This document shows, piece after piece, positions 5,433 to 59,324 of a stretch of DNA of 64,000 bases. The position numbers and the translations under genes were made by a program. How positions within the stretch are numbered: the stretch's first letter is position 1; every line of letters starts with the position of its first letter. The stretch comes from Octopus sinensis (lineage: Eukaryota). The stretch is from the NCBI RefSeq assembly GCF_006345805.1, contig NC_042997.1:99944001-100008000 (forward strand), written 5' to 3'. Under the pieces are notes generated by a model. That model worked only from the letters and a program-made list of their open reading frames with translations. It had not been told where the DNA came from and made no database searches.

Positions 5433-5905
5433 CAACATCACACTTTCACTCTGTGTGTATGTGTGTGTGTACAGATTATAGACAGACAGACAAGATAATA
5501 TATATATATACATATATATGAGTGTGTTTGTGTTTGTCCACCCCACCCATTGCTTGACAACTGGTGCAGGTTTGTTTATATCCCCATGAATTGGCAGTTC
5601 AAGAAAAGAGACCAAAAGAATAAATACCAGACTCATTAGTACTGGGGTTGATTTAGTTTTGAGATATCTCTATATATATATCATAGACATCATCATTATC
5701 ATCATCATTGCTTTCACGTCCATTTTTTTCCATGCTTGCAGCTATTCTATGTCTAGATACCCTTCTTGTCACCAACCCTCACCTGTTTTCAAGCAAGGTG
5801 AGATTTGCCCCATGCCCAGACATGTTCCTGCAAAATATTGGATATGAATGACACTTATTTACAACAATCAGAGGATGACAAGGAGACACACACAAACAAA
5901 CATAT

Positions 5906-8642: not shown

Positions 8643-9152
8643 CATCAGAAACATGCGTCTGGGAATCTATTCGGGGGAAAGCACTGGAAAGACATTTGGT
8701 TTTACACTTTTTACTATAAAAGAGAATTTTTTCTCAACTGTAACTGCAATGAATTTGCCTTTAGAAGTTAAAATATGTCCCAAACATATTTTAACTAACC
8801 CAAAGTGTGTTTATTCCTAATCACAGCTTTGTTCTAATGTGCTGCTGTATTTATCCCATCCAGGTGGTCCAATAGCACAACTCAGTCGCTGATACTGAGT
8901 GATTTTTAGTCAAAGCTACAGCTTTGAATCTGGCCAGTGTTATCTCTCTTCAGTATTTCCCATTGAGAAAGGCTAAAGAGCCAGAAATATGCATCTGAGA
9001 ATCCAATAGGGGGAAGCACTGGGCAGATATGGTGCTTTTTCACTTTTTACCATAAGGGAGAATTTTTCTCCATTGTAACTACAGTGAATTTGCCTTTGGG
9101 AATTAAAGTATGTCACTAAATATACATGTGTGTGTGTGTGTGTGTGTGTATA

Positions 9153-9196
<44 letters not shown>

Positions 9197-10489
9197 AATT
9201 TTTAATTTAGTAGGTTTGGGAATGACTGTGTGGTTGAGAGGTTAACTTCCAACCAATGATTTTATAATTTTATATATATGTAAGCATAGTGTGTGTATGT
9301 GTATGTGTGTGTAAATTTATATATATACACACACACACAGGTGTGTGTGTATGCATGCATGCTGGCAGTATTGATTGCTTAAATATCTAAAACTGATGCA
9401 CACCATAAACCAATCATCTTAGGAAATTCTACGTGAGATTGTTGGGAAAGTGTATTTAGAAACAAAAACAACTGCTTTTAAATGAAGCCAAGTAGAGTAA
9501 CTATCAGATGTCTTAGTCTATGACACATCGGGGAATCCTGTTTCATAGTGAGAATGGAAGAATATATTATCTCTCTCTCTCTCTTTTTCCATAACCCCCT
9601 CCCCCACCTCTGCCTCTCACTTCAGTCTTTTTCTTCCACTCTGTTATTTTTTTTTGTGTGTGTGTGTGTGTTAATCCCCCCGAGCGACTCCAGGCACATC
9701 TCCCTTTTAGCTAATGCACTTTTCAATTACCAGCTAAATGGATTGATGACTGTAAGATGGTTTCAGTTAAATTGTTTGATTTTTACAGCATTTCATAAGT
9801 AGGCTAGCTGAGAGTATAGATTTCTTCAAGCAAGATGAGTTCAGAGTGATGAATGCCAACCAGCAACAAACACACACACTTACACACACACACACACACA
9901 CCTGTTGGCTGTTGAAAACCATGTATAATCGATTTATTTTCTTTGTGTATCTTTTTAAGGGATTCCTAAATCCTTTGAAAATCTCCACTAAGGAACTACA
10001 AAGATTATCATCATTTTCATTAACATTTTGATAACCATTTTTTGACCATATGTTATCATATATTATCATATAAGCTAGGATTTGAAATTCTTGAAATTCA
10101 ACATTTCCTCATCTTGTCATTGGTCAGATCTCATCTCAACAGTCCTCCTTGAAACAAACTACTTTCCAAAGTTTTTTTTTAAACTTAACTTACAAGGTGT
10201 TTGGACTAAATTTGAAAGTTTGCATAAATGGAAAAGAAAACACAATATATCCCATCCAAAAATAAAAGTATTTTAAAAAATCAAAAAATATCAACTAGGT
10301 TATGGCAGTTTCCGCCATAACCTGAAGACCTCTTTTCATGCAAACTGTCAAATTTAGCCCAAAGACCCTGTGGTTAAATTTTTAAAAAACTTTGGAAAGT
10401 AGTTTGGTCAGATCTCATCTCAACAGTCCCCTTTGAAATAGTGACAAGACGAGGAAATGTTGAATTGCAGGCATTTCAAATCAAAGCTT

Positions 10490-11129: not shown

Positions 11130-13340
11130 GCTTCAGCCAGAGTCCTCACAAGCAAAGCACATAGGTATAAACTCTTCTGGGAAGGTAATAGTAATGGAAT
11201 TGGGGGTGAGGACATACTTCTTGCAGAGAAATGGGTGGATAAGGTCATAGAGGTAGTGAGGGTGTGTGATAGAGTATTAAACTCAGGCTAGTCTTGAAGA
11301 ATGGTATAGCTACAATTATCTCTGCCGATGCCTCACAAGCAGGCTTACCAAATGAACAGAAGGATCACTTCTATGATATTCTTCTGCAGGCTACCTCAAA
11401 GACAAGTAACAATGACCTCATCTTTGTGGCTGGAGATTTTAATGGGCATGTGGACAGCAACCTAGTATTTTCCATGGTGTACAAGACGCCATGGAGTTGG
11501 TACCAGAAATGAAGAGGGAACTAGGCTCCTGGAGGTCTGCGATGCAAATAACCTATTGATCTGCAACACCAAGTTCAGGAAGCCAGCAAGCCACCTAATA
11601 ACCTATCAATCAGGTGACTCTGCTAGCCAGATTGATTTCATTCTCACCAGACAGCGGGATGCATGGTTGCTCTTAAATACAAAGACCCTCCCTGGTGAAG
11701 AATGTGTCCCCCAGCATAGACCAGTTATTAGTGACTTTAGACTTGGGGCCAGAAGGATGCCAAAAAGCAGATCAATCTGGAAAAGAAGGACTTGGAAGCT
11801 TAAGAACCCTTCATATTGTCAGAGATTTAGGGATAACCTTACTGAAAAATTTGATGATAGGGAGGAGAAGCTACAGTCCTGAGACATAGAAGGCAACTGG
11901 GAATTCTGTGAGACAGTTTGCTGAGTGCCACAGACCAAATCTGTGGCTGGTGCAAAGTCCTTTCCAGACCTAGGGTAACATGGTGGTGTAACATTACTGT
12001 AGACAGGGCCATTAGAATAAAGAAAGAGGCCTGGAAGAGTGGAGATGGCAAGGGACTGTATCAGATAGTTAGAAGGGAAGTTAGGAGACAGGTATATATA
12101 ACCGAGGGAGAATCAGATAAGAAGTTTGCCAATGTTCAGCAACGTGAGGACCAAAGAACTGAAATGTTTCAGATAGCAAGACAGTGTGTGAGAGAAAATC
12201 ATGATGTCATAGGAGAGAAATGTGTCTGCTTAGATGATGGTACACTTGCATTTGATGATTCTGTAAAGAAAGAGGCTTGGAGATGCCGTTATGAAAGACT
12301 GCTGAATGTGGAGAATGAATGGAAGGAGGAGAGTCTGCCAAAGGTTGACCCAATTGAGGGACCAGCTACCCAAATCAACAGTACCCTGATAGATAAAGCA
12401 ATTAAGGATATGAAAACAAGGAAAGCACCTGGCCCATCAGGAATCACCACTGAGATGCTTAAAATATCAGGCAATGTGGGTTAAGGTCTTGTCACCCGCA
12501 TCGTAAATCAGGTAGTTCATGAAGGAGTCATACCCAATGACTGGTGTAGCAGCACCACAGTCAACTGCTACAAGGGAAAAGGTGATGCTTTAGATAGAAA
12601 TAACTACAGGGGTATCAAATTATTGGATCAGGTGATGAAAGTTACAGAGAGGGTCATAGCCCAACTAATTGGGGAGAGAGTCTGCTTAGATGAGATGCAG
12701 TTCAGTTTTGTGCCAGGCAGAAACACCACTGATGCTATATTTCTGGTAAGGCATCTGCAGGAGAAATACCTAGCCAAAGATTAACCATTGTACTTGGCTT
12801 TTGTTGACTTGGAGAAAGCCTTTGACAGGGTCCTCCGGTCCCTTATCTGGTGGTCAATGCGGAAACTGTGAATAGACGAGTGGCTGGTAAGAGCTGTACA
12901 AGCTCTATACAGGGACGCTATCAATAAGGTGAGGGTTGGCAATGAGTATAGTGAAGAATTCTGAGTAGAAGCAGGGATTCACCAGGGATCAGTCCTCAGA
13001 CCCCTCTTATTCATTACAGTCCTCCAGGCAATAACAGAGGAATTCAAGACAGGCTGCCCCTGGGAGCTCCTCTATGTTGATGATCTTGCTCTAATAGCCA
13101 AGTTACTGCCAAAACTAGAGACGAAGTTTAGAGTGTGGGAACAAGGTCTAGAATCAAAGGTTCTTAGAGTTAACCTAGCAAAAACCAAAGTCTTAGTAAG
13201 ACGGCTGACAAATCACAAACCCCTTCAGGTAGATGACCCTGCTTGATCTGTAGAAAAGGTGTGGGTAGAAACTTCATACAATGTACCCAGTATAAGCTAT
13301 GGATGCATAAAAGGTGCAGCAATATCAAAGGAAGGTTATG
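11130..13340 (+). mobile_element. RTE-clade LINE (AP endonuclease plus RT), decayed
   Basis: EN motifs IFVAGDFNGHV, SQIDFIL, QHRPVISD; RT motifs YRGIKLLDQVMKV, FVDLEKAFDRV, GIHQGSVL, LLYVDDL; multiple stops and frameshifts. Confidence 0.92.
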
Positions 13341-31070: not shown

Positions 31071-34000
31071 ACGCAACTCCATAAAAATATATATGCAGGA
31101 GTGGCTGTGTACTAAGAAGCTTGCTTCTAGAAACGACTGGGTCCAGGTTCAGTCCTACTGTGTGGCACCTTGGGCAAGTGCCTTCTACTATAGCCTCAGG
31201 CCAACTAAAGCCTTGTAGGTGGATTTGGGAGGTGGAAGCTGAAAGAAGCCCATCGTGTGTGTGTGTGTGTGTGTGTGTTAGTGTTTGTCCCCACCACTGC
31301 TTGACAACTGGTGTTAATGTGTTTACATACCCGTAAATGAGTGGTTCAGCAAAAGGCTTAAAAAATAATTAAAAAAAGCACTGGGGTCAATTCATTCAAC
31401 TAAGATCCTTTAAGGTGGTGCTCCAACATGGCCACAGTCTAATGACTGAAACAAGAGAATATAAAAGTCACATCATTGAAATCTCAAAGCTACTCTTTTC
31501 TACTCTAGGTACAAGGTCCAAAATTTTGGGGGAGGGGGCCTGTCAATTAGATCAACTTCAGTACACAACTGGTACTTAATTTATCGACTATGAAAGGATG
31601 AAAGGCAAAGTCGACCTCAGCAGAATTTGAACTCAGAACGTAAAGACAGACGAAATACTGCTAAGCATTTTGCCCGGTGTGCTAACGTTTCTGCCAGCTC
31701 ACCACCTTATTAATTAAAAATGTTAATAAATATAGATTAGATTTGACAAAATAATCTGAATGCTAAAGGGTTAAAGAGTTGTTAAAAACCAGTTGTAGAA
31801 TGCTAATAGGTTGTTCTTGGTGAAATTTATTTATCATATTATCCATCACAATCATTAAATCAGAGGTATGTAAGGCATGTTTGTAGAAAACACTCAAGCA
31901 AATAGTACACATCTTGATGGAAAGTGTTCTTCTTACCCATGATGCAACAAAAAAAAACATTAAGGAATTCAAACAAAATAGAACCAGTCAAGCTATTAAG
32001 CATCCACTCTGATACAACTTGGTGAAAATGAATGTTAAACTGGTGATGATGATAATGATGATGGTGGTGGTGGTGGTGGTGGTAGCTAATGGTTGTGATA
32101 CTGAAGTTGGTGGCAGAGATGGTAGCTATGCCTGTGGTGGGGTGGGGTGGGGGAGAAGAGGACTCTTGTCAGTGGTAGTAGTAATAATGATGATGATGGT
32201 AGTGGTTGAAATGATAATGATGACAGTTGTGGTAGTAGCAATGACAGTGGTGGCAGTGGTGGTGGTGGGAGGAAGGGAGGGAGGGGATTGTAATAATGAT
32301 GGTAGCGGTTGCAGCCATTTCCACTTGGGTTATCTATGTAAATAGGAAAGCAAGTAAAAATTCTTAAATATTGTATGAAGAATATTATCAAGAGAATTAA
32401 TGTTGAAATTTATTTAGTTTAAGAGAATATTATTTTTATGTAATTCCAAATGAGTTAGCATAGCAAAATAATTTTACAAGTCTACAAAAATGTTTTCCAC
32501 ATGTTAATCAGAAAATCAGCTAAGTAGCATTTAACAGCTGGCATTGGAAGAGTAGAACGGACCCATAAATTAATTAGACACTACAAAACAAGAAGATTGT
32601 ATTTTGAATGATGGGTTATGAAACTGGATTTGGTAGCTGCCTATTATGTTGTCTTTTGAAAGGCACTAAACTGTAATTGCTGCAATATCATACAGAAGTG
32701 GAAAATACCCATCTTCTACAACACCAGGTCACATACATGTGCCAAGAAAAAGAAAAACAAGCAAATGCAACAGTAGATATCCAATTTGATCATGACATGT
32801 CTCAATGAATTACTGTTACTACACACAGTAAGACAAGTTCATTGTAGTTTCTCTTGGAAATTTCACAGTGTCTGCATGATCTTGGATCTTCTGATCACTG
32901 CACAATGTAGCATTGATCTTCCAATCAATTATTACATCTCCCTTTGTATTGAAATATTACACAATAGCTACAATTTTACATACTCTATGGTCAGATCCTT
33001 GATAAGTCCATGATCATTCATAGCACCAAATATGCTTTACTTATGATTTGCCTGAGCTTACCCAAATGAGAACACAAGAGACAAGGCATATCACCCCACA
33101 GTTCATCCAACTGCACCAAATCTTGTGAGATATCCACTCCAAAAGGATTCACAAGATGTGCTGCTGCTGTACAGACCCAAACCACAACTTACAACATCTG
33201 AAATTAATAACCTGGCAAGAGATATTGATTTAATAATGTAACTTCAATAAGAAGACCATCCAAGATAGTAAAATACTCTGTTATGATGTTCTATATCTAT
33301 AAGCTACCATACATATACAACTACATTCAGATTTCTTGCTAAACTCATCTCAACAAACTTTAGAGAATACTCAAATCTATTCAGAAGGTTTTGTAAGCAG
33401 CAGTCCTGCAAATAATGCTGCTAAATTTACTGCAGAATCTTATTGCAATCTACATACAGCAAAAAAATCTCCTGCAAGATTTCCCTTTCCAATCTCACTC
33501 TCCTCACTTACCAATGGTACACAGACACCAAATATAGCATACTCTGTATGTGGACAAAAAAATGGAACTAGCATGGTTGGAATGCTTTTGATCATAGATT
33601 TGCTAGATCATAGATTTGCTAGATCTGGACTAAACAACGACAACTTCTTTGACCACAAAAGTTCAACAAAGCAACAAGACCAGAAGAGTTCTAAACCATC
33701 TACAAATCAGTATGTTCATGATTTGGGCCTGTTTCTTGGGGTAGTTACTATAGATCTGGAAGCAGGTAAAAAAATGAAAATCATCTCTTTGAACAAATTA
33801 ATATCTGTAACATTAGCAAATAAGCAGGCCTGCTACTCTCACTTTTAATATCTTAAAATATATAAGACAGCAAGCTGGCAGAATTGTTAACACATTAGGC
33901 AAAATGCTTAACAGTATTTCATCCATCTTCATGTTCTGAGTTCAAATTCCGCCAAGGTTGACTTTGCCTTTAATCCTTTTAGGGTCAATAAAATAAGTAC

Positions 34001-47400: not shown

Positions 47401-49407
47401 TGCAATCATTAGAAATATAAACAAGACCAGCTGACAAATTCAATTTAACTTTTCGACTGATCGTGATTGCAGATCGTGCGAGCTAATGAAGAAGGGCTTC
47501 TATGATGTATTTGCTAGAATTGGCAGCCAAATCTCTCTCAAACCACACTACAGCAGGCATGGGCTATCTTTTTCTTCAAACGGGCCGTATGAGACATAGG
47601 TATCATCAGGCGGGCAGCGCTACTAAAAATATTCAAGGTAATTTTTCGTTAGATGTGTCATTCAGAAAGCCCCGCGAGCCACTGCTTGCCTTTTACTGCT
47701 CTACAGTCTATAAAGAGTGGGGAACTATATGGCAATGGATATTTTAGTCTTAGATACAGTGTCTGAGAAAAAAGGGGAAAGGTTACAGACGAACACCAAC
47801 CATGGGCCTCAAGGATTAAAGCTAACCTGGTGTCAAATAACAACAATAGACTAAATACATTGACTATATTCAGTTTTGTCTCAAGCAGATAAGTGTTCAC
47901 ATCTCAACAGAGTCAAAACTGTTTTTATTTATGCAGGATTCAATATAATTAAGACAATAACGTGCAGTATTTAATCAACTATATATCCATATCCTACAAA
48001 AGTTAATTTTGTGTCAAGCTGTAAGTTTTGTTTTGACTCATGGTTCTGAGTTCAAATATGGCATCACATTTCATCCTGACTGGTTGGCTGGCTTCATGCT
48101 CTTGTTTGATGTGGGGCAGGGGTCATCCCAGATTAGTGGTCCCAGAGGCATCATTATGCGTAGAGCTGACCAGATCCACCAGTGCTCTCCATCGCTGTTG
48201 GTCCTATGCCAGACCCCCTGCATCCACCAAGGTGACATCAAGCCTCTGGAGGTCTTCCCCAATTATATCTAGCCATCTGGTGCGAAGCCTGTCACAAGGC
48301 TCCTTCAGGCCCACAACTTCTGCATCAAATGAGAGTAAAGTATTGGTAGGATGATCTAGCAGGAGACAGAGGACATGTTCCCACGACATTTCATCCCAAC
48401 AGACAAAAAAAATCAAATAATTATCTGGCAGAAATACATAGTGGTATTTCTTTACATACTGAGTTCAAATTCAATTACGGTTAACTTTTCCTTTCATCCT
48501 TTCAGGGTTGATGAAATAAGATATCTATCAAGTACTGAGGTTCAGTGTGATCGTTTTGCTCCTTCCCCTCCAAATTGGTGGCCTTGTGCCCAAATCAGAA
48601 AGAATTCTTTACCTAAGTAGGCAAGGTTGCTTCCTAACAATCATGTGGTCTACGGTTCATTCCCACTGCTTGGCACCTTGGGTAAGTGTCTTCTACTATA
48701 GCACCAGGCCAACCAAAGTAGATTTGATAGACAGAACTTGAGAAAAAGCCCATTATATATATATATGTACATATGTATGTGTGTGTTATGTTTGCCCCAC
48801 CACCACCACAGCCTGAAAATTGGTGTTGGTTTGTGTATATCCCTATGACTTAGAAGATCAACAAAAGAGACAGATAGAATAAGTACCAAGCTTTTTAAAA
48901 ACATAAGTGCTGAGGTCAATTTTTTCAGTGAAACCCTTCAAGGTAGTGCCCCAGTATGGTAGCAGTCCAATAACTGAAACAATCAAAAATAAAAAAATAA
49001 AAATAATACAGTCAATAGTTTTTCATCTTTCAGCAATTAACTTAATGATGGAGAAAAAATTTTTTATTTGCATTAAATGGTTTTGAAAAATATAATGCTG
49101 TACTCTTCCTCCTCGGCAGCTTGATCTAAAACAGTGGGAGGCTCCTAGTCTGGTGTTGATATAGTCTCTCAACAGGCTGCTATTGAGTGTCCCTTCCTTG
49201 GGTAATATTTTCATTGTCAGAAGGTAAAGGTGAACTGGTTTCCTCAGTGGGCAGGACCAGCTGAAGGTACCAGCATCTAAGTCCCCTGGAGTGTCACATG
49301 CCTGGTGGGTACAACAGCTTGTATTTGGGATCAAAATAACAAGGGGGACATGACTATACATGCATACATACATACATACATACATACACACGTACATACA
49401 TACATAC

Positions 49408-49455
49408 CTGCTGCTGATGAGGCACGAAACATGCCAAAATCATGTGATACAGCAG
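49408..49455 (+). ncRNA. Compact type I hammerhead ribozyme motif with one core substitution (G12 to A)
   Basis: CTGCTG-CTGATGA-GGCA-cgaaaca-TGCC-AAAA-TCA-tg-TGA-TA-CAGCAG; stems I (6 bp), II (4 bp) and III all pair; follows a (TACA)n tract. Confidence 0.7.
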
Positions 49456-50539: not shown

Positions 50540-51700
50540 GGTAGGTTTACTTAGTCAGAGGGGAAGTAGATAAGAAAATACTTGCTAACACTCTGCATTG
50601 TAAGGACCAAAGACTTGAAGTGTTGCATATTGCAAGACAGTGTGTGAGAGAGAATCATGATGTCATGAAATGTTGCTAAATGCAGAGAATGAATGAGAGA
50701 AAGAGAGCCTGCCAAATATTGACCCAACAAAGGGACCAGCTATCTAAACTGACAGTACTTTGGTAGATAAAGCAATTAAGGGTATAAAGACAAGGAAAGC
50801 CCCTGGCCCATCAGGAATCACTGTAGAAATGCTTAAAATATCTGGCAGTATAGACTATAGACTAGTCACCTGTATGGTCAACCAGGTTATACATGAAGAA
50901 GTTATACCCAGTGACTGGTGTAGCAACACCATAGTCAACTGTTACAAAGGAAAAGGTGATGCATAAGATAGGAATAATTACAGAGGTAGCAAATGGTTGG
51001 ATCAGATGGTGAAAGTCACAGAGAGGGTGAGGGTTATAACCCAACTAATCAGGGAGAGAGTTAATTTAGATGAGATGCAGTTTGGGTTTGTGCCAAGGAG
51101 AAGCACCACTAATGCTATATTCTGGTAAGACAGCTGCAGAAGAAATTCCTACCCAAAGATAAACCTCTGTACCTGGCTTTCGTTGACTTGGAGAAAGCCT
51201 TTGATAGGGTCCCCCGATCTCTTCTCTGGTAGTCAATGTGGAAATAGCTCCTACCTCTACTGGTAACAAAGGGCTTCTCGCTCAGGATGAAAGGTAGACT
51301 ATGACGCATGTGTATGAACAGCCATGCTACATAGCAGTGAAACATGGGCTGCAACTGCTGAGAACATGCATAGGCTTGAAAGAAATGAAGCTAGTATGCT
51401 CCACTAGATGTGTAATGTCAGTGTGCATACACAACAGAGAGTAAGCACCCTGAGAGAAAGTTGGACATAAGAAGCATCAGGTGTGGTGTGCAAGAGAAAT
51501 GACTATGCTGGTATGGTCATGTGTTGCACAAGGATAAGGACAGCTGTGTAAAGAAGTGCTGATCTCTGAACCTGTGAAAGAGGTAGACCCAAGAAGACCT
51601 GGAATGAGATGGTGAAGCACGACCTTCAAACATTGGGCCTCACTGAGGCAATGACAAGTGACCAAGACCTTTGGAGATATGCTGTACATGAAACCACCCG
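50540..51700 (+). mobile_element. RTE LINE RT and 3' portion with internal deletions
   Basis: KAPGPSGITVEMLK, CYKGKGDA, LAFVDLEKAFDRVP; 3' end GACCTTTGGAGATATGCTGTAC. Confidence 0.85.
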
Positions 51701-52560
51701 GCAAGATATAACCTATGAATCCTCTTGCTGATGCCTTTTACTAGGTTCTTGAATACTATGGGTGGGTGACTGGAGGCTGTGTTTATGTACGACAGCCTCC
51801 CATTTGGTTTGCAGTAGCACCTGTAAGTACCGGAGCCCAGGTCAAGTGTGATGTCTAAGAAGTCTGCTGATGTAATGTTGGTCTCTATGGTGAACTTCAA
51901 GCCCATGGAGGCAAGTATGCTGGTTAAGTCTTTCCTAAGTCTGTCTAGTGTATGGCCACTTGTTCTCCTTGAGATGGCCAGGGCATCATCTCTGTAGAGG
52001 CCAAAGAGGATGGAGGGGAACTTTTTTCTAAGGGTATCTAGGATACATAACCCGATAAGGTTGCAAATATCAGTCCTGTCGTAGGATCCCATAGAGTTGG
52101 ATTGCTTGATCCATGCCAAGCCTTTGTTGAACAGTACTGCCTTCCTGACATGCATGATTATCTCTACATATCTGTCTCTAATGTTAGTGAAGCCCCTAGT
52201 GAAAGAAAGCGCCTTGATCAGTAGCCCTTTTGTTACAGACGGGTAAAAATTGACTATATGAAATTGGGTGAACCTTGCCCTGCTTCTACTTTTGTTGGCG
52301 TCGAACCAAGTTGTCACCTCATTGGTGCTGCACCACAAAGAAAGGTTGGTGTAAATGATTTCTTTAAAAATGTGTTTGCTCGCCAAACCGATCTTGGATT
52401 TGACCGTTTAGGGTCAGAGACAAAGTTCAGTTAATGATTTTTTATTGTGATGAACATGTTTCTTTTAGCCAGGATCTCTACCCTATCATCTATCTCTAGT
52501 TCGTTAGCTAATTTTTTGGCTTCACTGTTGGTGTCATTATACACGTGACATCGCTGGCCA
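51700..52560 (-). mobile_element. Penelope-like element RT fragment (YRDD type), older and from a different subfamily than the palindrome
   Basis: WCSTNEVTTWF, FHIVNFYPSV, EIIMHVRKAVLF, MGSYDRTDICNLIG, GLYRDDAL, DFLDITLDL, YINTASSHPP. Confidence 0.85.
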
Positions 52561-53066: not shown

Positions 53067-53142
<76 letters not shown>

Positions 53143-53143
<1 letters not shown>

Positions 53144-53702
53144 CGGGAAGCTTTATGAAAATAGACAAAAGACGAAGGCAGGTGGAATACAAACAAACAA
53201 TTGTATTAGTATGGCGCTCAGGAAATATAAATAAAACAAGTCTTCAACAGAAAGATACACAGAGAAAAAACACAGAAAGAAGGAGAGAAAAAAAATAAAG
53301 CATGAAATGAATGTAAAAAAAAGGGGTAATATATGAGAAAATAAAAATAAAACGAACGGGACAGTTTATGCGAACAAGTTCAAGGTTGAGAGTTCAAGGT
53401 TAAAAATGTATAGACGTCGTGGTATATTTTTTAAGGATTTCACAACACATATGAAAGGGAATCCACTAAACTGGACGCCCTTACGCTAAAGAGATCCGCA
53501 TGAGTCTCAACCACTAAAAATTTTTCTGAAGAAAAACTTAGCACAACATGAACGTAAGTGAGCAGGACAAATGAAAAATAACAAAAATATAGATTAACCC
53601 CATACAATTGTTTCACTGTTAATAAATTATGCAACTTTACTTACACAATTAATTTGCAGATCCTCTTACTAAATTAATATACAATTTTTTCACCCTCATT
53701 TT

Positions 53703-53735
<33 letters not shown>

Positions 53736-53940
53736 ACGGGAAGCTTTATGAAAATAGACAAAAGACGAAGGCAGGTGGGAAACAAACAAACAATTGTATT
53801 AGTATGGCGCTCAGGAAATATAAATAAAACAAGTCTTTAACATTTCGAGCCTACGCTCTTCAACAGAAAGATACACAGAGAGAAAAAAAACACAGAAAGA
53901 AGGAGAGAAAAAAAATGCGTGCAGTAACTAACGAATCATA
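53143..53940 (-). mobile_element. 5'-truncated PLE-like insertion with pLTR-like direct repeats (53143-53300 and 53735-53915) bounded by (TA)n
   Basis: Two ~160-180-bp direct repeats. The internal segment gives a weakly GIY-YIG-C-terminal-like peptide IPFICVV..RRLYIFNLELSTLN. A hammerhead-like motif at 53834-53871 is deleted (23 nt) in the other repeat. Confidence 0.55.
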
Positions 53941-54026
53941 TATATATATATGTATATATATATATATTATTAGTGAATTGAAGAAATGGAGTTGAACGAA
54001 GATTGAACAGAATTCCTTTTATTGCA

Positions 54027-54106
54027 TTCTACACATGTTTCAAAAGCCACAATTTTCCAAATTCTGGTTAAATAAGGATACCATATTGTGGCTTTCTCTT
54101 CAGGAA
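54027..54106 (-). ncRNA. Type I hammerhead ribozyme motif, complete (left arm 3' UTR/pLTR)
   Basis: UUC-CUGAAGA-GAAAGCCACAAU-[31 nt]-AUUGUGGCUUUU-GAAA-CAUGUG-UA-GAA; 12-bp stem II, palindromic stem III ACAUGU, 3-bp stem I, GUA cleavage triplet ending at 54030. Confidence 0.8.
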
Positions 54107-54700
54107 AAAAATAGGAATTCCGTTGGCAGAACAAAACAGAACAGAGGCGCAGCAAAGCAATTTGAATGAAGAGGCTCTTTAAGAGCCCATGGCTGAACTG
54201 ATTATCAATGTACGTTGAAATCGGGTGGTGGGTGCGTTGAAGATATTTATAGGTCAGGCGGCGGTCAAATCCAGTAGGTGAGAGCAAGGGGTGTGGAGAT
54301 GTTCTGTGTGACCAAAACTAAAATTCTGAATATTTTAAGAATACTGGGTGTATTTTTTGGGGGCGAGACAAAAACTACCTAGAAGCATGTATGTGTGTAC
54401 TGGCCTATGTGTGCGCGGCCGTATGTTGGTAAAAGGCGCTACATAATGGTCACTGCTGAAAAATTCGTCAGGCGGCAGAAAATATTTTTTGTGTTCGTGT
54501 GTTCGTCTAGGCCTGCTTGTCAAAAAATTAACGTCGTCAAAGAATCCTAAGGGTATATAAAATTCCTGCGTTTGCTTCCAAAACAAACCACCATTCGCCT
54601 AATGGGAGTAATTTCCCCTTGCAAGGGTTATTCATATATTTCTTAAAAAGCTTTTTCAAAAATTATTTCCAAGGATTATTGGTGCTAATTATCTTAGGTA

Positions 54701-56542
54701 TCATTTATAAGCAAGATAAGTATAACGCCGCCAATGGGGACATCGAAAAGCCGACTGTAAAAGTCCGTTTACCAACCGGTCTCTGGCGAACAATATGTGG
54801 AAAAGCTCAGAGACACAAAGATTGCACTTCCTTCTGCCCCTATCAAATGGGAGGGCCACCGACAAAATCGACCATTCCAGCCTGAAACCTGAGTTCGCGT
54901 TCTTCAAACCCCATATAAGCTTGCTAAGTCCCGTAGCTTGGTATTTATTCACGTCGCGAAAAGTTGCGAAATGGTTGGAAATTCGCAAGGCCAATTTTGA
55001 CGATGAGGCCCTGACATACGAGTAGACATCTGAGTCCGTGTAAACCTTACATTGGTAAATGGCATTTCTGATCTTGGAGTTATTCGACAAGAACCTTATT
55101 CTATTGGGATTAGCTTCTGAAATTAGAACTGCGTTACTGTTACTATATTGATTGCGAGAACTGCGGCCGCTTACTACTTTATATTCCTCAAATTCACTGT
55201 TAATTAACGGACTAACCCCTGAGTCTTCCCTATCACTGAGAGCGCTGTAATTGCTAATATCCGTGGGCCTACTATTGCCGGAAACGATGCTGGAGTTGCT
55301 ATTAGGACTCTCTACATTAATGACCCGAGCTGCGCTCACCTCACTATTGCCATTACTAACGTTAATGACATCACCATTTCTTCTATCGCTACATCTAGTA
55401 TTTAATCCCTGGTTGGTACTGAGATTATCAGTCACTGTACTGGCTCTCTTATCATTATTACTACTATTATTATTCCTACTGAGCGCTAAACTGGGAGCGG
55501 ACGGAGCTGCGCCTCCGGACAAAGGTGGTAGGGTCTTAATAAGCAGCCTATTATTATGGGAGGCGATTATCTGGGAAAGATTTTTTGTGTTGGAGAAAGC
55601 TATCCTAACTTTATGCGAATTGACCGTGGAGTAATATTTGGAATCTCTGGGGAAGTTACTGGCGATGGCTTGTCGAAACAGGAGGGGAAGGTTAGTTCTA
55701 ATCTGCTTACCAAAGGGAATTACAAACCATATATACTTATTCCTATTTATGTGATGGGTCGGGAAGCCAGCTCTAACATTAGGGTGGGTGATTATAGGAT
55801 GAATAACGGGTTTTGGTTTAGTGTGGACTCCCCCGGACCGATAATTATCTTTGTTCCCTAAATTAAATCCGGAAGTACCTGCTCTAACACTCCCCGCGCT
55901 CCCGTCGCTACTTAAATTATTTATGTTATTATAGACGGTCCTATCCTGATGACCGAATGGTGGCATCGGAAGGGCTGGATCAATATATACTACCTTCTGC
56001 CTATAACCGGCTTTGGATAGTGCGGCGTTATAAAATTCCGCTTTCTGCATAAAAATGTCGGCACTAGCGGACAAGTTAGACAATCTTAGAGAGATGTTTT
56101 TAACCAAATTGTCTGTTACGGTTTTGGCATGATTGGAGAAGATACTGACATACTTCAAATTAGTGGAAGGCTTATGGTAAGGGCAGTATGAATCGCTATG
56201 GAGGTTTAGTATAACGTCTAGGAAATTAGCCTTGGTGAGTTCATTATCAAAAACTATATTCATGCCCATTCTATTAAAGAACCTAGCTAACCTATTCTTA
56301 GTTTTCTGTACGATTCTGTTCGTGGTGTTTTGCAGGTAAAACAGACAATCGTCCCGATACAGGCCGCCCGCGATATCCGGGAATTGGTCGGACAATTCGT
56401 AGAGAATATAGATTCCGACCAAATCGGCTATCTGCGCACTATCCGAACTACCCATAGGCACATCGAATTCATTGGGAGTATCTTTACGAATCCACAACTT
56501 ATTTTCAAACCTTATAAATGATTTTCTGGCAACTAAAATAAT
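54701..56542 (-). CDS. PLE RT-GIY-YIG polyprotein, N-terminally truncated (left arm)
   Basis: Open frame from the palindrome centre: IILVARKSF..FDVPMGSSDSAQIADLVG, GLYRDDCL, NFLDVIL, IWFVIPF, AIYQCKV..YSYVR, LRISNH, KCNLCVSE. The annotated start is TTG, not ATG. Confidence 0.9.
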   Translation of the reverse strand: MILVARKSFIRFENKLWIRKDTPNEFDVPMGSSDSAQIADLVGIYILYELSDQFPDIAGGLYRDDCLFYLQNTTNRIVQKTKNRLARFFNRMGMNIVFDNELTKANFLDVILNLHSDSYCPYHKPSTNLKYVSIFSNHAKTVTDNLVKNISLRLSNLSASADIFMQKAEFYNAALSKAGYRQKVVYIDPALPMPPFGHQDRTVYNNINNLSSDGSAGSVRAGTSGFNLGNKDNYRSGGVHTKPKPVIHPIITHPNVRAGFPTHHINRNKYIWFVIPFGKQIRTNLPLLFRQAIASNFPRDSKYYSTVNSHKVRIAFSNTKNLSQIIASHNNRLLIKTLPPLSGGAAPSAPSLALSRNNNSSNNDKRASTVTDNLSTNQGLNTRCSDRRNGDVINVSNGNSEVSAARVINVESPNSNSSIVSGNSRPTDISNYSALSDREDSGVSPLINSEFEEYKVVSGRSSRNQYSNSNAVLISEANPNRIRFLSNNSKIRNAIYQCKVYTDSDVYSYVRASSSKLALRISNHFATFRDVNKYQATGLSKLIWGLKNANSGFRLEWSILSVALPFDRGRRKCNLCVSELFHILFARDRLVNGLLQSAFRCPHWRRYTYLAYK

Positions 56543-58384
56543 ATTATTTTAGTTGCCAGAAAATCATTTATAAGGTTTGAAAATAAGTTGTGGATTCGTA
56601 AAGATACTCCCAATGAATTCGATGTGCCTATGGGTAGTTCGGATAGTGCGCAGATAGCCGATTTGGTCGGAATCTATATTCTCTACGAATTGTCCGACCA
56701 ATTCCCGGATATCGCGGGCGGCCTGTATCGGGACGATTGTCTGTTTTACCTGCAAAACACCACGAACAGAATCGTACAGAAAACTAAGAATAGGTTAGCT
56801 AGGTTCTTTAATAGAATGGGCATGAATATAGTTTTTGATAATGAACTCACCAAGGCTAATTTCCTAGACGTTATACTAAACCTCCATAGCGATTCATACT
56901 GCCCTTACCATAAGCCTTCCACTAATTTGAAGTATGTCAGTATCTTCTCCAATCATGCCAAAACCGTAACAGACAATTTGGTTAAAAACATCTCTCTAAG
57001 ATTGTCTAACTTGTCCGCTAGTGCCGACATTTTTATGCAGAAAGCGGAATTTTATAACGCCGCACTATCCAAAGCCGGTTATAGGCAGAAGGTAGTATAT
57101 ATTGATCCAGCCCTTCCGATGCCACCATTCGGTCATCAGGATAGGACCGTCTATAATAACATAAATAATTTAAGTAGCGACGGGAGCGCGGGGAGTGTTA
57201 GAGCAGGTACTTCCGGATTTAATTTAGGGAACAAAGATAATTATCGGTCCGGGGGAGTCCACACTAAACCAAAACCCGTTATTCATCCTATAATCACCCA
57301 CCCTAATGTTAGAGCTGGCTTCCCGACCCATCACATAAATAGGAATAAGTATATATGGTTTGTAATTCCCTTTGGTAAGCAGATTAGAACTAACCTTCCC
57401 CTCCTGTTTCGACAAGCCATCGCCAGTAACTTCCCCAGAGATTCCAAATATTACTCCACGGTCAATTCGCATAAAGTTAGGATAGCTTTCTCCAACACAA
57501 AAAACCTTTCCCAGATAATCGCCTCCCATAATAATAGGCTGCTTATTAAGACCCTACCATCTTTGTCCGGAGGCGCAGCTCCGTCCGCTCCCAGTTTAAC
57601 GCTCAGTAGGAATAATAATAGTAGTAATAATGATAAGAGAGCCAGTACAGTGACTGATAATCTCAGTACCAACCAGGGATTAAATACTAGATGTAGCGAT
57701 AGAAGAAATGGTGATGTCATTAACGTTAGTAATGGCAATAGTGAGGTGAGCGCAGCTCGGGTCATTAATGTAGAGAGTCCTAATAGCAACTCCAGCATCG
57801 TTTCCGGCAATAGCAGGCCCACGGATACTAGCAATTACAGCGCTCTCAGTGATAGGGAAGACTCAGGGGTTAGTCCGTTAATTAACAGTGAATTTGAGGA
57901 ATATAAAGTAGTAAGCGGCCGCAGTTCTCGCAATCAATATAGTAACAGTAACGCAGTTCTAATTTCAGAAGCTAATCCCAATAGAATAAGGTTCTTGTCG
58001 AATAACTCCAAGATCAGAAATGCCATTTACCAATGTAAGGTTTACACGGACTCAGATGTCTACTCGTATGTCAGGGCCTCATCGTCAAAATTGGCCTTGC
58101 GAATTTCCAACCATTTCGCAACTTTTCGCGACGTGAATAAATACCAAGCTACGGGACTTAGCAAGCTTATATGGGGTTTGAAGAACGCGAACTCAGGTTT
58201 CAGGCTGGAATGGTCGATTTTGTCGGTGGCCCTCCCATTTGATAGGGGCAGAAGGAAGTGCAATCTTTGTGTCTCTGAGCTTTTCCACATATTGTTCGCC
58301 AGAGACCGGTTGGTAAACGGACTTTTACAGTCGGCTTTTCGATGTCCCCATTGGCGGCGTTATACTTATCTTGCTTATAAATGA
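56543..58384 (+). CDS. PLE RT-GIY-YIG polyprotein, N-terminally truncated (right arm)
   Basis: Mirror copy that differs from the left arm at 3 residues (P/S, A/T, I/T). Confidence 0.9.
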   Translation: MILVARKSFIRFENKLWIRKDTPNEFDVPMGSSDSAQIADLVGIYILYELSDQFPDIAGGLYRDDCLFYLQNTTNRIVQKTKNRLARFFNRMGMNIVFDNELTKANFLDVILNLHSDSYCPYHKPSTNLKYVSIFSNHAKTVTDNLVKNISLRLSNLSASADIFMQKAEFYNAALSKAGYRQKVVYIDPALPMPPFGHQDRTVYNNINNLSSDGSAGSVRAGTSGFNLGNKDNYRSGGVHTKPKPVIHPIITHPNVRAGFPTHHINRNKYIWFVIPFGKQIRTNLPLLFRQAIASNFPRDSKYYSTVNSHKVRIAFSNTKNLSQIIASHNNRLLIKTLPSLSGGAAPSAPSLTLSRNNNSSNNDKRASTVTDNLSTNQGLNTRCSDRRNGDVINVSNGNSEVSAARVINVESPNSNSSIVSGNSRPTDTSNYSALSDREDSGVSPLINSEFEEYKVVSGRSSRNQYSNSNAVLISEANPNRIRFLSNNSKIRNAIYQCKVYTDSDVYSYVRASSSKLALRISNHFATFRDVNKYQATGLSKLIWGLKNANSGFRLEWSILSVALPFDRGRRKCNLCVSELFHILFARDRLVNGLLQSAFRCPHWRRYTYLAYK

Positions 58385-58978
58385 TACCTAAGATAATTAG
58401 CACCAATAATCCTTGGAAATAATTTTTGAAAAAGCTTTTTAAGAAATATATGAATAACCCTTGCAAGGGGAAATTACTCCCATTAGGCGAATGGTGGTTT
58501 GTTTTGGAAGCAAACGCAGGAATTTTATATACCCTTAGGATTCTTTGACGACGTTAATTTTTTGACAAGCAGGCCTAGACGAACACACGAACACAAAAAA
58601 TATTTTCTGCCGCCTGACGAATTTTTCAGCAGTGACCATTATGTAGCGCCTTTTACCAACATACGGCTGCGCACACATAGGCCAGTACACACATACATGC
58701 TTCTAGGTAGTTTTTGTCTCGCCCCCAAAAAATACACCCAGTATTCTTAAAATATTCAGAATTTTAGTTTTGGTCACACAGAACACCTCCACACCCCTTG
58801 CTCTCACCTACTGGATTTGACCGCCGCCTGACCTGTAAATATCTTCAACGCACCCACCACCCGATTTCAACGTACATTGATAATCAGTTCAGCCATGGGC
58901 TCTTAAAGAGCCTCTTCGTTCAAATTGCTTTGCTGCGCCTCTGTTCTGTTTTGTTCTGCCAACGGAATTCCTATTTTT

Positions 58979-59051
58979 TTCCTGAAGAGAAAGCCACAAT
59001 ATGGTATCCTTATTTAACCAGAATTTGGAAAATTTTGAAACATGTGTAGAA
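58979..59051 (+). ncRNA. Hammerhead motif with a 7-nt deletion in stem II (right arm)
   Basis: The core CTGAAGA (58982-58988) and GAAA (59037-59040) are intact, but GTGGCTT is missing, leaving at most a weak 4-bp GAAA/TTTT stem II. Confidence 0.7.
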
Positions 59052-59252
59052 TGCAATAAAAGGAATTCTGTTCAATCTTCGTTCAACTCCATTTCTTCAA
59101 TTCACTAATAATATTAAAATTCAATTATCCGCACCAAAGCACGGTTGCAACACCAAATGGTTTTATCTCCAACCGTGCTTTCTTCTGCTGTGATTTTTGC
59201 TACCAAGGTATCGGTTAAACTTTTGAGTAATCTGCAACAAGATTATTCATCT

Positions 59253-59255
<3 letters not shown>

Positions 59256-59324
<69 letters not shown>
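59256..59324. repeat. (TA)n microsatellite closing the palindromic insertion region
   Basis: Directly visible; its counterpart (TA)n at 53938-53966 abuts the left arm. Confidence 0.95.

Follow-up and report, generated by a model that had tools for sequence, protein, structure and literature searches.

In Penelope-like elements (PLEs), an inverted, 5'-truncated copy can lie adjacent to the 5' end of the element, a tail is often present at one end only, and (TA)n tracts serve as targets (Craig et al., 2021; PMC8557442). Copies inverted head-to-head, with palindromes at their junctions, were reported before, and self-priming was proposed (Arkhipova et al., 2013; PMC3846280). In the described cases of endonuclease-positive (EN+) PLEs, an inverted fragment, often a pseudo-long terminal repeat (pLTR) of ~200 bp, is accompanied by a longer forward unit, and the junction palindromes that were quantified measure 15-38 bp (PMC8557442, PMC3846280, PMC2377424). 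Transformed strains of Drosophila melanogaster contained Penelope copies that were rearranged and had long inverted repeats, and the detected small interfering RNAs correspond to the inverted regions (PMC3681739). The inverted structures of PLEs are known to trouble assemblers (PMC8557442), and long tandem or inverted ones broke an assembly (PMC3846280). In 2024, a purified PLE protein from Anolis was shown to cut both strands of the target in vitro and to extend them, and to start reverse transcription at two internal sites; the interval between these corresponds to the tail (PMC11167929). PLEs are also a known component of octopus genomes (PMC13282606). Here, we describe a zero-spacer palindrome of 5.15 kb, composed of two head-to-head, 5'-truncated PLE copies, located in a 64-kb stretch of the Octopus sinensis genome (contig NC_042997.1, positions 99,944,001 to 100,008,000). 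This whole stretch is called the window, and coordinates are window positions unless a comparison locus is named. The structure was read from the assembled sequence.

The locus shares with the inverted-copy and inverted-pLTR insertions of EN+ PLEs the head-to-head arrangement, 3' ends that point outward, heavy 5' truncation, a one-sided tail, an AT-rich or (TA)n target and a palindromic junction (PMC8557442, PMC3846280, PMC2377424). It differs from the described cases in that the partners are equal, 2.57 kb each and mirrored to the base, and neither a full-length unit nor a direct pLTR is present. The palindrome is an unusually long, symmetric and clean example of a documented PLE insertion pattern. 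The novelty that an earlier, sequence-only reading of this DNA had attributed to it was overstated, as head-to-head inverted copies, palindromic junctions and the idea of self-priming had all been published in 2013 (PMC3846280).

A repeat search placed the centre of the palindrome at 56542/56543, between AAAATAAT on the left and ATTATTTT on the right, with 0 nt separating the arms. The main mirrored block (54048-56542 and 56543-59037) comprises 2495 nt on each side; an outer block of 82 nt (53964-54045 and 59033-59114) is mirrored as well and is displaced by an indel. The 200 nt spanning the centre fold as a perfect hairpin, which merely restates the symmetry. It is not possible that such a structure arose by chance. 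The 3' ends of both arms face outward and both outer ends adjoin TA microsatellites. On the left, the arm stops at a TA-rich patch inside the element (..CACTAATAATAT), and the terminal 141 nt are missing there; they are found as a tail of the right arm (Table 1). At the left junction, the ATAT at 53964-53967 can be assigned either to the target or to the element, so that the two are joined through microhomology, fused in register.

The base-by-base mirror comparison, together with a three-way alignment, revealed nine substitutions between the arms, all of them transitions, and one 7-bp indel, which corresponds to an arm identity of 99.6% and a divergence of 0.36%. Five substitutions (left/right positions 55580/57505, 55525/57560, 55486/57599, 55271/57814 and 55257/57828) lie closer to the centre than the remaining four (54417/58668, 54299/58786, 54250/58835 and 54167/58918). 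The central 1924 bp (55581-57504) are fully symmetric, and all ten differences are located more than 962 nt from the centre; were the differences evenly spread, 962 nt free of them on either side would be expected with P ~0.01. The difference-free centre could result from arm-to-arm correction or from chance. When the O. sinensis copy at another locus (L001, see below) was used as an outgroup, six of the eight polarisable changes, and the indel, fell on the right arm. Editing of the A-to-I type was considered as a source of the differences and set aside: the right arm shows four T>C changes on its sense strand, too few for such a case. The sequence-only reading had already recognized the 5.15-kb palindrome without a spacer, the outward 3' ends and the unmirrored flanks, with (TA)n on the left and a tail followed by (TA)n on the right, and all of this is confirmed, the tail being 141 nt instead of 140. 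Its statement that the arms mirror exactly holds for the central 2 x 962 nt only and fails for the full arms.

In both arms, a reading frame is open from the centre up to the stop codon. The comparison with full-length relatives indicates that the arms are cut between RT (reverse transcriptase) motifs A and B, ~27 amino acids (aa) past motif A (FxQFDI) and ~25 aa ahead of motif B (MGSSDSAQ). Motif B and motif C (YRDD) are retained in both arms, while motif A was lost to the truncation, and the copies are dead because of this loss. Among the arm differences, five are placed inside the open reading frame (ORF), three non-synonymous and two synonymous, as expected of dead copies. Identification of the encoded protein was not straightforward. 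Pfam gave no match for the window protein or for the neighbouring ORFs, and no match was obtained in a profile search of Protein Data Bank (PDB) sequences with the window protein. Since these searches were blind, the identity of the RT was drawn from homologues, motifs and a fold search. An exact-protein look-up showed that the window ORF is not on record. The homology search with this ORF yielded ~120 relatives, most of them 650-760 aa long, and the closest homologues include proteins of 700-760 aa that have an RT and, at the C-terminus, a GIY-YIG domain. The window protein matched the full-length relatives P0002 and P0003 with E=2.1e-73 and E=6.7e-64, respectively; the closest match was the O. 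sinensis protein P0001 (72% identity over the part covered). An AlphaFold model of P0003 (pLDDT 86.7, pTM 0.85) was used in a fold search of the PDB. The top entries were telomerase reverse transcriptases (TERT; 3du5 and 6usr), followed by retron, DRT, group II intron, LINE-1 and R2 RTs, and the list also contained 9d4s, an RT on a snap-back substrate. Such a telomerase-first ranking is what would be expected of a PLE.

In the endonuclease part, the GIY-YIG residues Y..Y-G..R..H..E..N are invariant or nearly so among 49 relatives, and the window copy reads IYQ..YVR..R..NH..E..N. One relative (P0017) gave a weak Pfam match to GIY-YIG (E=0.0011, below the cut-off), and another (P0047) is named a GIY-YIG endonuclease by one source. 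Judging from the homologues and motifs, each arm is a copy of an EN+ PLE with a C-terminal GIY-YIG endonuclease. Thus, the arms had been correctly taken for PLE copies in the sequence-only reading, an identification that now stands on homologues, motifs and the fold match of a relative; the shared truncation base between RT motifs A and B, and the frame open to the centre, were likewise borne out. The dN/dS value for the window copy versus the L001 copy is 0.12 (329 codons), which argues that the family spread as a functional, active element. Two gene models deserve a separate comment. The O. sinensis P0001, annotated 'myb-like protein I' (L001 10001-11056), is an internal piece of the PLE ORF, from the RT thumb to the linker rich in asparagine and serine (N/S-rich), and represents a misannotation as a host gene. 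A 5'-truncated PLE copy also underlies the O. bimaculoides P0068 (locus L002), which is annotated 'GATA zinc finger domain-containing protein 14-like'.

Table 1. Window positions of the palindrome, its reading frames, its indel and its borders. TRF, Tandem Repeats Finder.
Feature	Position	Strand	Remarks
Left (AT)15 microsatellite	53938..53967		Half of the presumed (TA)n target (TRF)
Left arm	53964..56542	-	5'-truncated PLE copy; sense strand is minus; outer end at internal TA-rich patch
GCCACAA, 7 bp	54046..54052		Present in left arm and in O. sinensis L001; deleted from right arm at 59032/59033
Left-arm open frame	54701..56542	-	613 codons, starting at the centre; encodes motifs B to E of the RT, the thumb, an N/S-rich linker and a GIY-YIG-type endonuclease
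Centre of symmetry, TAAT/ATTA	56539..56546		Zero spacer; 5' truncation point common to both arms
Right arm	56543..59114	+	Mirrored part of 5'-truncated PLE copy; sense strand is plus
Right-arm open frame	56543..58384	+	613 codons and stop (stop ends 58384); product differs from left-arm product by 3 aa
141-nt tail	59115..59255	+	Terminal 3' element sequence, right arm only; aligns with 3' end of O. sinensis copy
Right (TA)34.5 microsatellite	59256..59324		Other half of the presumed target (TRF)

The assignment to a PLE clade was made by published diagnostic motifs only. For the Hydra clade, these are DKT in place of DKG, RWK, CxxC and CxH around the conserved E and N residues, a core free of CCHH, and insertion in (TA)n (Craig et al., 2021; PMC8557442). 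Both O. sinensis copies and the relatives have DKT; the relatives show RWK as their consensus, and O. sinensis reads RW-L. Both corresponding regions are truncated away in the window copy. The window copy contains CNLC..E..N..CPH and no conserved Cys pair within the GIY-YIG core. Insertion in (TA)n is seen for the window pair, for L001 and for a further comparison locus, L003. The octopus family therefore resembles the Hydra clade in DKT, RW(K), the lack of conserved Cys in the GIY-YIG core, CxxC/CxH around E and N, a single ORF and a (TA)n target (PMC8557442). There are also differences. The CxCX5C linker upstream of GIY-YIG is found in P0002, P0003 and P0017 and in the consensus of 49 sequences (CNCRxKxxC), and is missing in the window copy and the O. 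sinensis copy, both of which read NPNRIRFLSNNSKIRNAIYQC there. Between the thumb and the endonuclease, an N/S-rich insert is present (57450-58050, mirrored at 55035-55635; L001 10300-11100), which recalls the asparagine-rich inserts of rotifer Penelope elements (PMC3846280). The octopus family is also larger, about 3.65 kb compared to under 3 kb in the Hydra clade, and yielded no hammerhead core: neither Rfam nor a search for the core motif revealed one in the window copy or in L001. Both arms are devoid of the 5' region where the motif usually sits. On the window, Rfam gave only spurious matches to miRNA hairpins, caused by the palindrome and (TA)n. These negatives carry little weight because Rfam, even at E<=5, is silent on a core that is visible in L003. 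There, the pLTR of a related PLE contains a canonical hammerhead core (CTGACGAG-CGCGTAAGCGCG-AAAC, 5795-5825) that is plain by eye. A minimal hammerhead-like core, CTGATGAGGCACGAAAC, is located beside (CATA)n at 49405-49435 (+) of the window, below every Rfam threshold, and could be a remnant of another PLE or of a retrozyme.

Insertions of relatives were sampled at one genomic place per protein, which shows inverted and tandem habits of the elements and is too few for frequencies. At the O. sinensis locus L001, the family inserted independently, and the flanks are unrelated to those of the window pair. The order there is a microsatellite, a 35-nt inverted 3' fragment (8766-8800) and a forward copy extending past motif A as far as the N-terminus. 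The inverted fragment and the left arm of the window have their outer ends at one and the same position of the element, ~140 nt short of the true 3' end, and the fragment is not mirrored by the adjoining copy. A second copy fragment is situated downstream; it is only 79% identical and is therefore regarded as a separate insertion at the same microsatellite. More distant relatives behave alike, with unmirrored inverted 3' pieces upstream of a forward copy. In L003, an inverted pLTR of 331 nt lies beside (TA)n and is offset by 168 nt from its forward partner. In L006, an inverted 5'-truncated copy (aa 531-721) directly precedes a full copy, and L005 contains partial tandems. Complex inverted insertion with a one-sided tail is seen in the window pair, with inverted 3' fragments in L001, L003 and L006 and partial tandems in L005. 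The forward course of the L001 copy through motif A to the N-terminus also bears on the architecture of the family. Had long terminal inverted repeats been its normal form, as the sequence-only reading had allowed, the palindrome would be no truncation product; the L001 copy shows that this is not so. Outside the PLE protein matches of L004, at 9384-9681, we noted a zero-spacer palindrome of 99% identity with arms of 149 nt, beside a tRNA-like match on an unrelated contig.

In twin priming of LINE-1, the 3'-OH of the second target strand also primes on the RNA, which gives an inverted segment within one insertion, and the segments represent distinct stretches of the RNA that adjoin each other. 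This type of twin priming is ruled out for the window locus, where both arms cover the same 2.57-kb interval of the element. Hairpin self-priming by RTs, known from second-strand cDNA (complementary DNA) synthesis and from the snap-back of group II-like RTs, would copy the nascent cDNA in inverted orientation. A loop, hence a spacer, normally remains, and such priming is not known to have been demonstrated for PLE RTs.

The explanation that we tentatively prefer assumes one retrotransposition event of a Hydra-clade-like PLE into (TA)n, in which the two target ends served as primers on a single broken RNA. It is proposed that the nuclease of the element would open both strands of the (TA)n tract and that both 3'-OH ends would prime reverse transcription on the same RNA, the right one at the RNA 3' terminus and the left one at the UA-rich patch 141 nt upstream. 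Both cDNAs would then run to the same 5' end of the broken template, within the RT gene. At this break, the 3' ends of the cDNAs might meet, aided by a self-complementary patch (ATAT to TAATATTA) or by end-to-end template jumping, and each cDNA would be copied on the other, giving a perfect centre with no hairpin loop. An early abort of the left-end cDNA would generate short, non-mirrored inverted fragments such as those of L001, L003 and L006. This course of events is supported by the outer ends at (TA)n, the one-sided tail and the L001 fragment that ends at the same element coordinate. It is plausible, judging from the sequence, that the parent element contained a self-complementary patch of 4-8 bp at the centre, ATAT up to TAATATTA; the site homologous to the fold point reads GAT ATA ATT and AAT GTG A in two O. 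sinensis copies. The protein of the Anolis element Poseidon cuts and extends both strands in vitro and initiates internally (PMC11167929); priming from both target strands would yield just such an outward-facing pair, and two start sites would leave a tail on one side only. However, Poseidon belongs to another clade, its tail is 30-40 nt compared to 141 nt here, and the completion of integration was never reconstituted (PMC11167929).

The arms share one breakpoint and are not separated by a spacer, so both must derive from one template end, and two independent insertions of the same family that happened to lie head-to-head are ruled out. The family does target (TA)n, and two copies, 79% identical, are present at one (TA)n region in L001; nevertheless, an identical breakpoint would arise by chance in ~1 of several thousand cases, and the 99.6% identity between the arms contrasts with about 79% between the arms and the O. 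sinensis copy. The probability left for this explanation is negligible, and the same view had been taken in the sequence-only reading. That reading had favoured another single event, in which the cDNA snaps back on itself. In this scenario, only the right (TA)n end primes a cDNA, whose 3' end switches at the truncation point onto the nascent cDNA and uses it as the template for a reverse copy. After opening of the hairpin, microhomology at the TA-rich patch would allow its end to be linked to the left (TA)n end, with the last 141 nt being trimmed. The same truncation points and the zero spacer come automatically, a self-complementary patch at the fold point is plausible, the left junction contains the ATAT microhomology, and self-priming of PLEs was proposed on the basis of palindromes at inverted junctions (PMC3846280). 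However, a real hairpin needs a loop of 3-4 nt, and with 1-2 bp closing it the primer would be very weak, while an asymmetric loop would leave a spacer, and none is seen. The non-mirrored inverted 3' fragments in L001, L003 and L006, with outer ends at the same kind of TA patch, are also unaccounted for. Moreover, differences that date from the formation should fall on the copied (left) arm, whereas six of the eight polarised changes and the indel are on the right. Hence, of the earlier proposal, the single event and a plausible fold-point patch of 4-8 bp are retained, but snap-back shares its final sequence with at least one other route coupled to integration, and on its own it leaves the non-mirrored relatives unexplained. 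We consider it possible, if on the unlikely side, and rank priming from both ends slightly above it because the latter accounts for the fragments of L001, L003 and L006.

Two further explanations are less likely. An assembly artefact, i.e., a fold-back or chimeric long read or a mis-join in the assembly graph, has to be considered, as zero-spacer palindromes are typical of reads with a missed adapter or of fold-back reads and inverted PLE structures trouble assemblers (PMC8557442). Nevertheless, the arms differ by nine transitions and the 7-bp indel, and the mirror stops at the element boundaries and not in unique flanks. The flanks are unlike each other, although both start with (TA)n. In addition, there are no N bases in the 64-kb window, and the repeat search of the whole window found no second structure of the kind besides the 5.15-kb palindrome. 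An artefact thus seems improbable. The alternative that an ordinary 5'-truncated copy underwent an inverted duplication later, at the DNA level, through a replication template switch or fold-back repair at TA microhomologies, appears about as improbable, or slightly more so. It could make use of (TA)n tracts and AT-rich micro-palindromes, which are prone to hairpins and template switching, and there is microhomology at both junctions (ATAT at 53964-53967 and AT/AT at the centre). On the other hand, both breakpoints would have to match landmarks of the element, namely the 5' junction and the TA patch also used in O. sinensis L001, the mirror includes no host DNA, and structures of this kind are documented products of PLE transposition (PMC8557442, PMC3681739).

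Priming from both target ends, our preferred explanation, meets several difficulties itself. It needs both cDNAs to stop at the same nucleotide, i.e., the template RNA to be broken exactly there; snap-back of a single cDNA yields the same final sequence; and the palindrome is known from the assembled sequence alone. The model also leaves unexplained the absence of differences within 962 nt of the centre. The last debatable issue is the age of the structure. According to the octopus transposable element clock, a Jukes-Cantor distance of 0.09 equals about 25 million years (My) (PMC13282606). On this scale, the 0.36% divergence of the arms would, as a rough inference, correspond to roughly 0.5 My, if the differences arose after the insertion. 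Alternatively, they date from the formation of the palindrome, through RT errors or the use of two template molecules. Long perfect palindromes are unstable. A survival of ~0.5 My, with the differences acquired after the insertion, would therefore be surprising and also weighs against the preferred explanation. That priming from both (TA)n ends on one RNA took place in vivo, each cDNA being copied on the other, as hinted at by the in vitro work of 2024 (PMC11167929), and that the palindrome was kept for ~0.5 My in the octopod germline with its inner kilobase held identical by arm-to-arm correction, is a combination that we regard as doubtful.

With no host gene recognised in it, the window as a whole has the look of intergenic DNA rich in repeats. 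An orthologous or empty site was sought, and the flanks of the window pair matched only dispersed repeats in L001 and L002. A second, divergent fragment of a Hydra-type PLE RT (51640-52401, minus strand; motifs A to D; 33% aa identity to P0003) is located 1.5 kb to the left of the palindrome. Its motif A reads QFHI and not QFDI, and it shows no DNA similarity to the arms, being of a different family. Just left of the palindrome, a block composed of (TA)n and an A/G-rich unit of 155-190 bp occurs twice (53070-53296 and 53708-53925, 84% identical), with no further copy in the window; the pair is to be explained either by a local duplication or by a short element that likewise inserts into (TA)n. 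Three ORFs of 170-190 aa (1054-1569, 11918-12484 and 33336-33848) have no Pfam match.

In other respects, the locus is a transposon copy that is dead and surrounded by repeat-rich DNA. Assemblies can be broken at such loci, which can also be mis-annotated as genes, as in the case of the O. sinensis 'myb-like protein I', and the palindrome, if transcribed, would give a long hairpin RNA. For the mechanism of PLE integration, a clean, young and fully symmetric head-to-head pair, with its one-sided tail and the recurrent inner start site at the TA patch, could become a reference case for distinguishing between priming from both target ends and cDNA snap-back.

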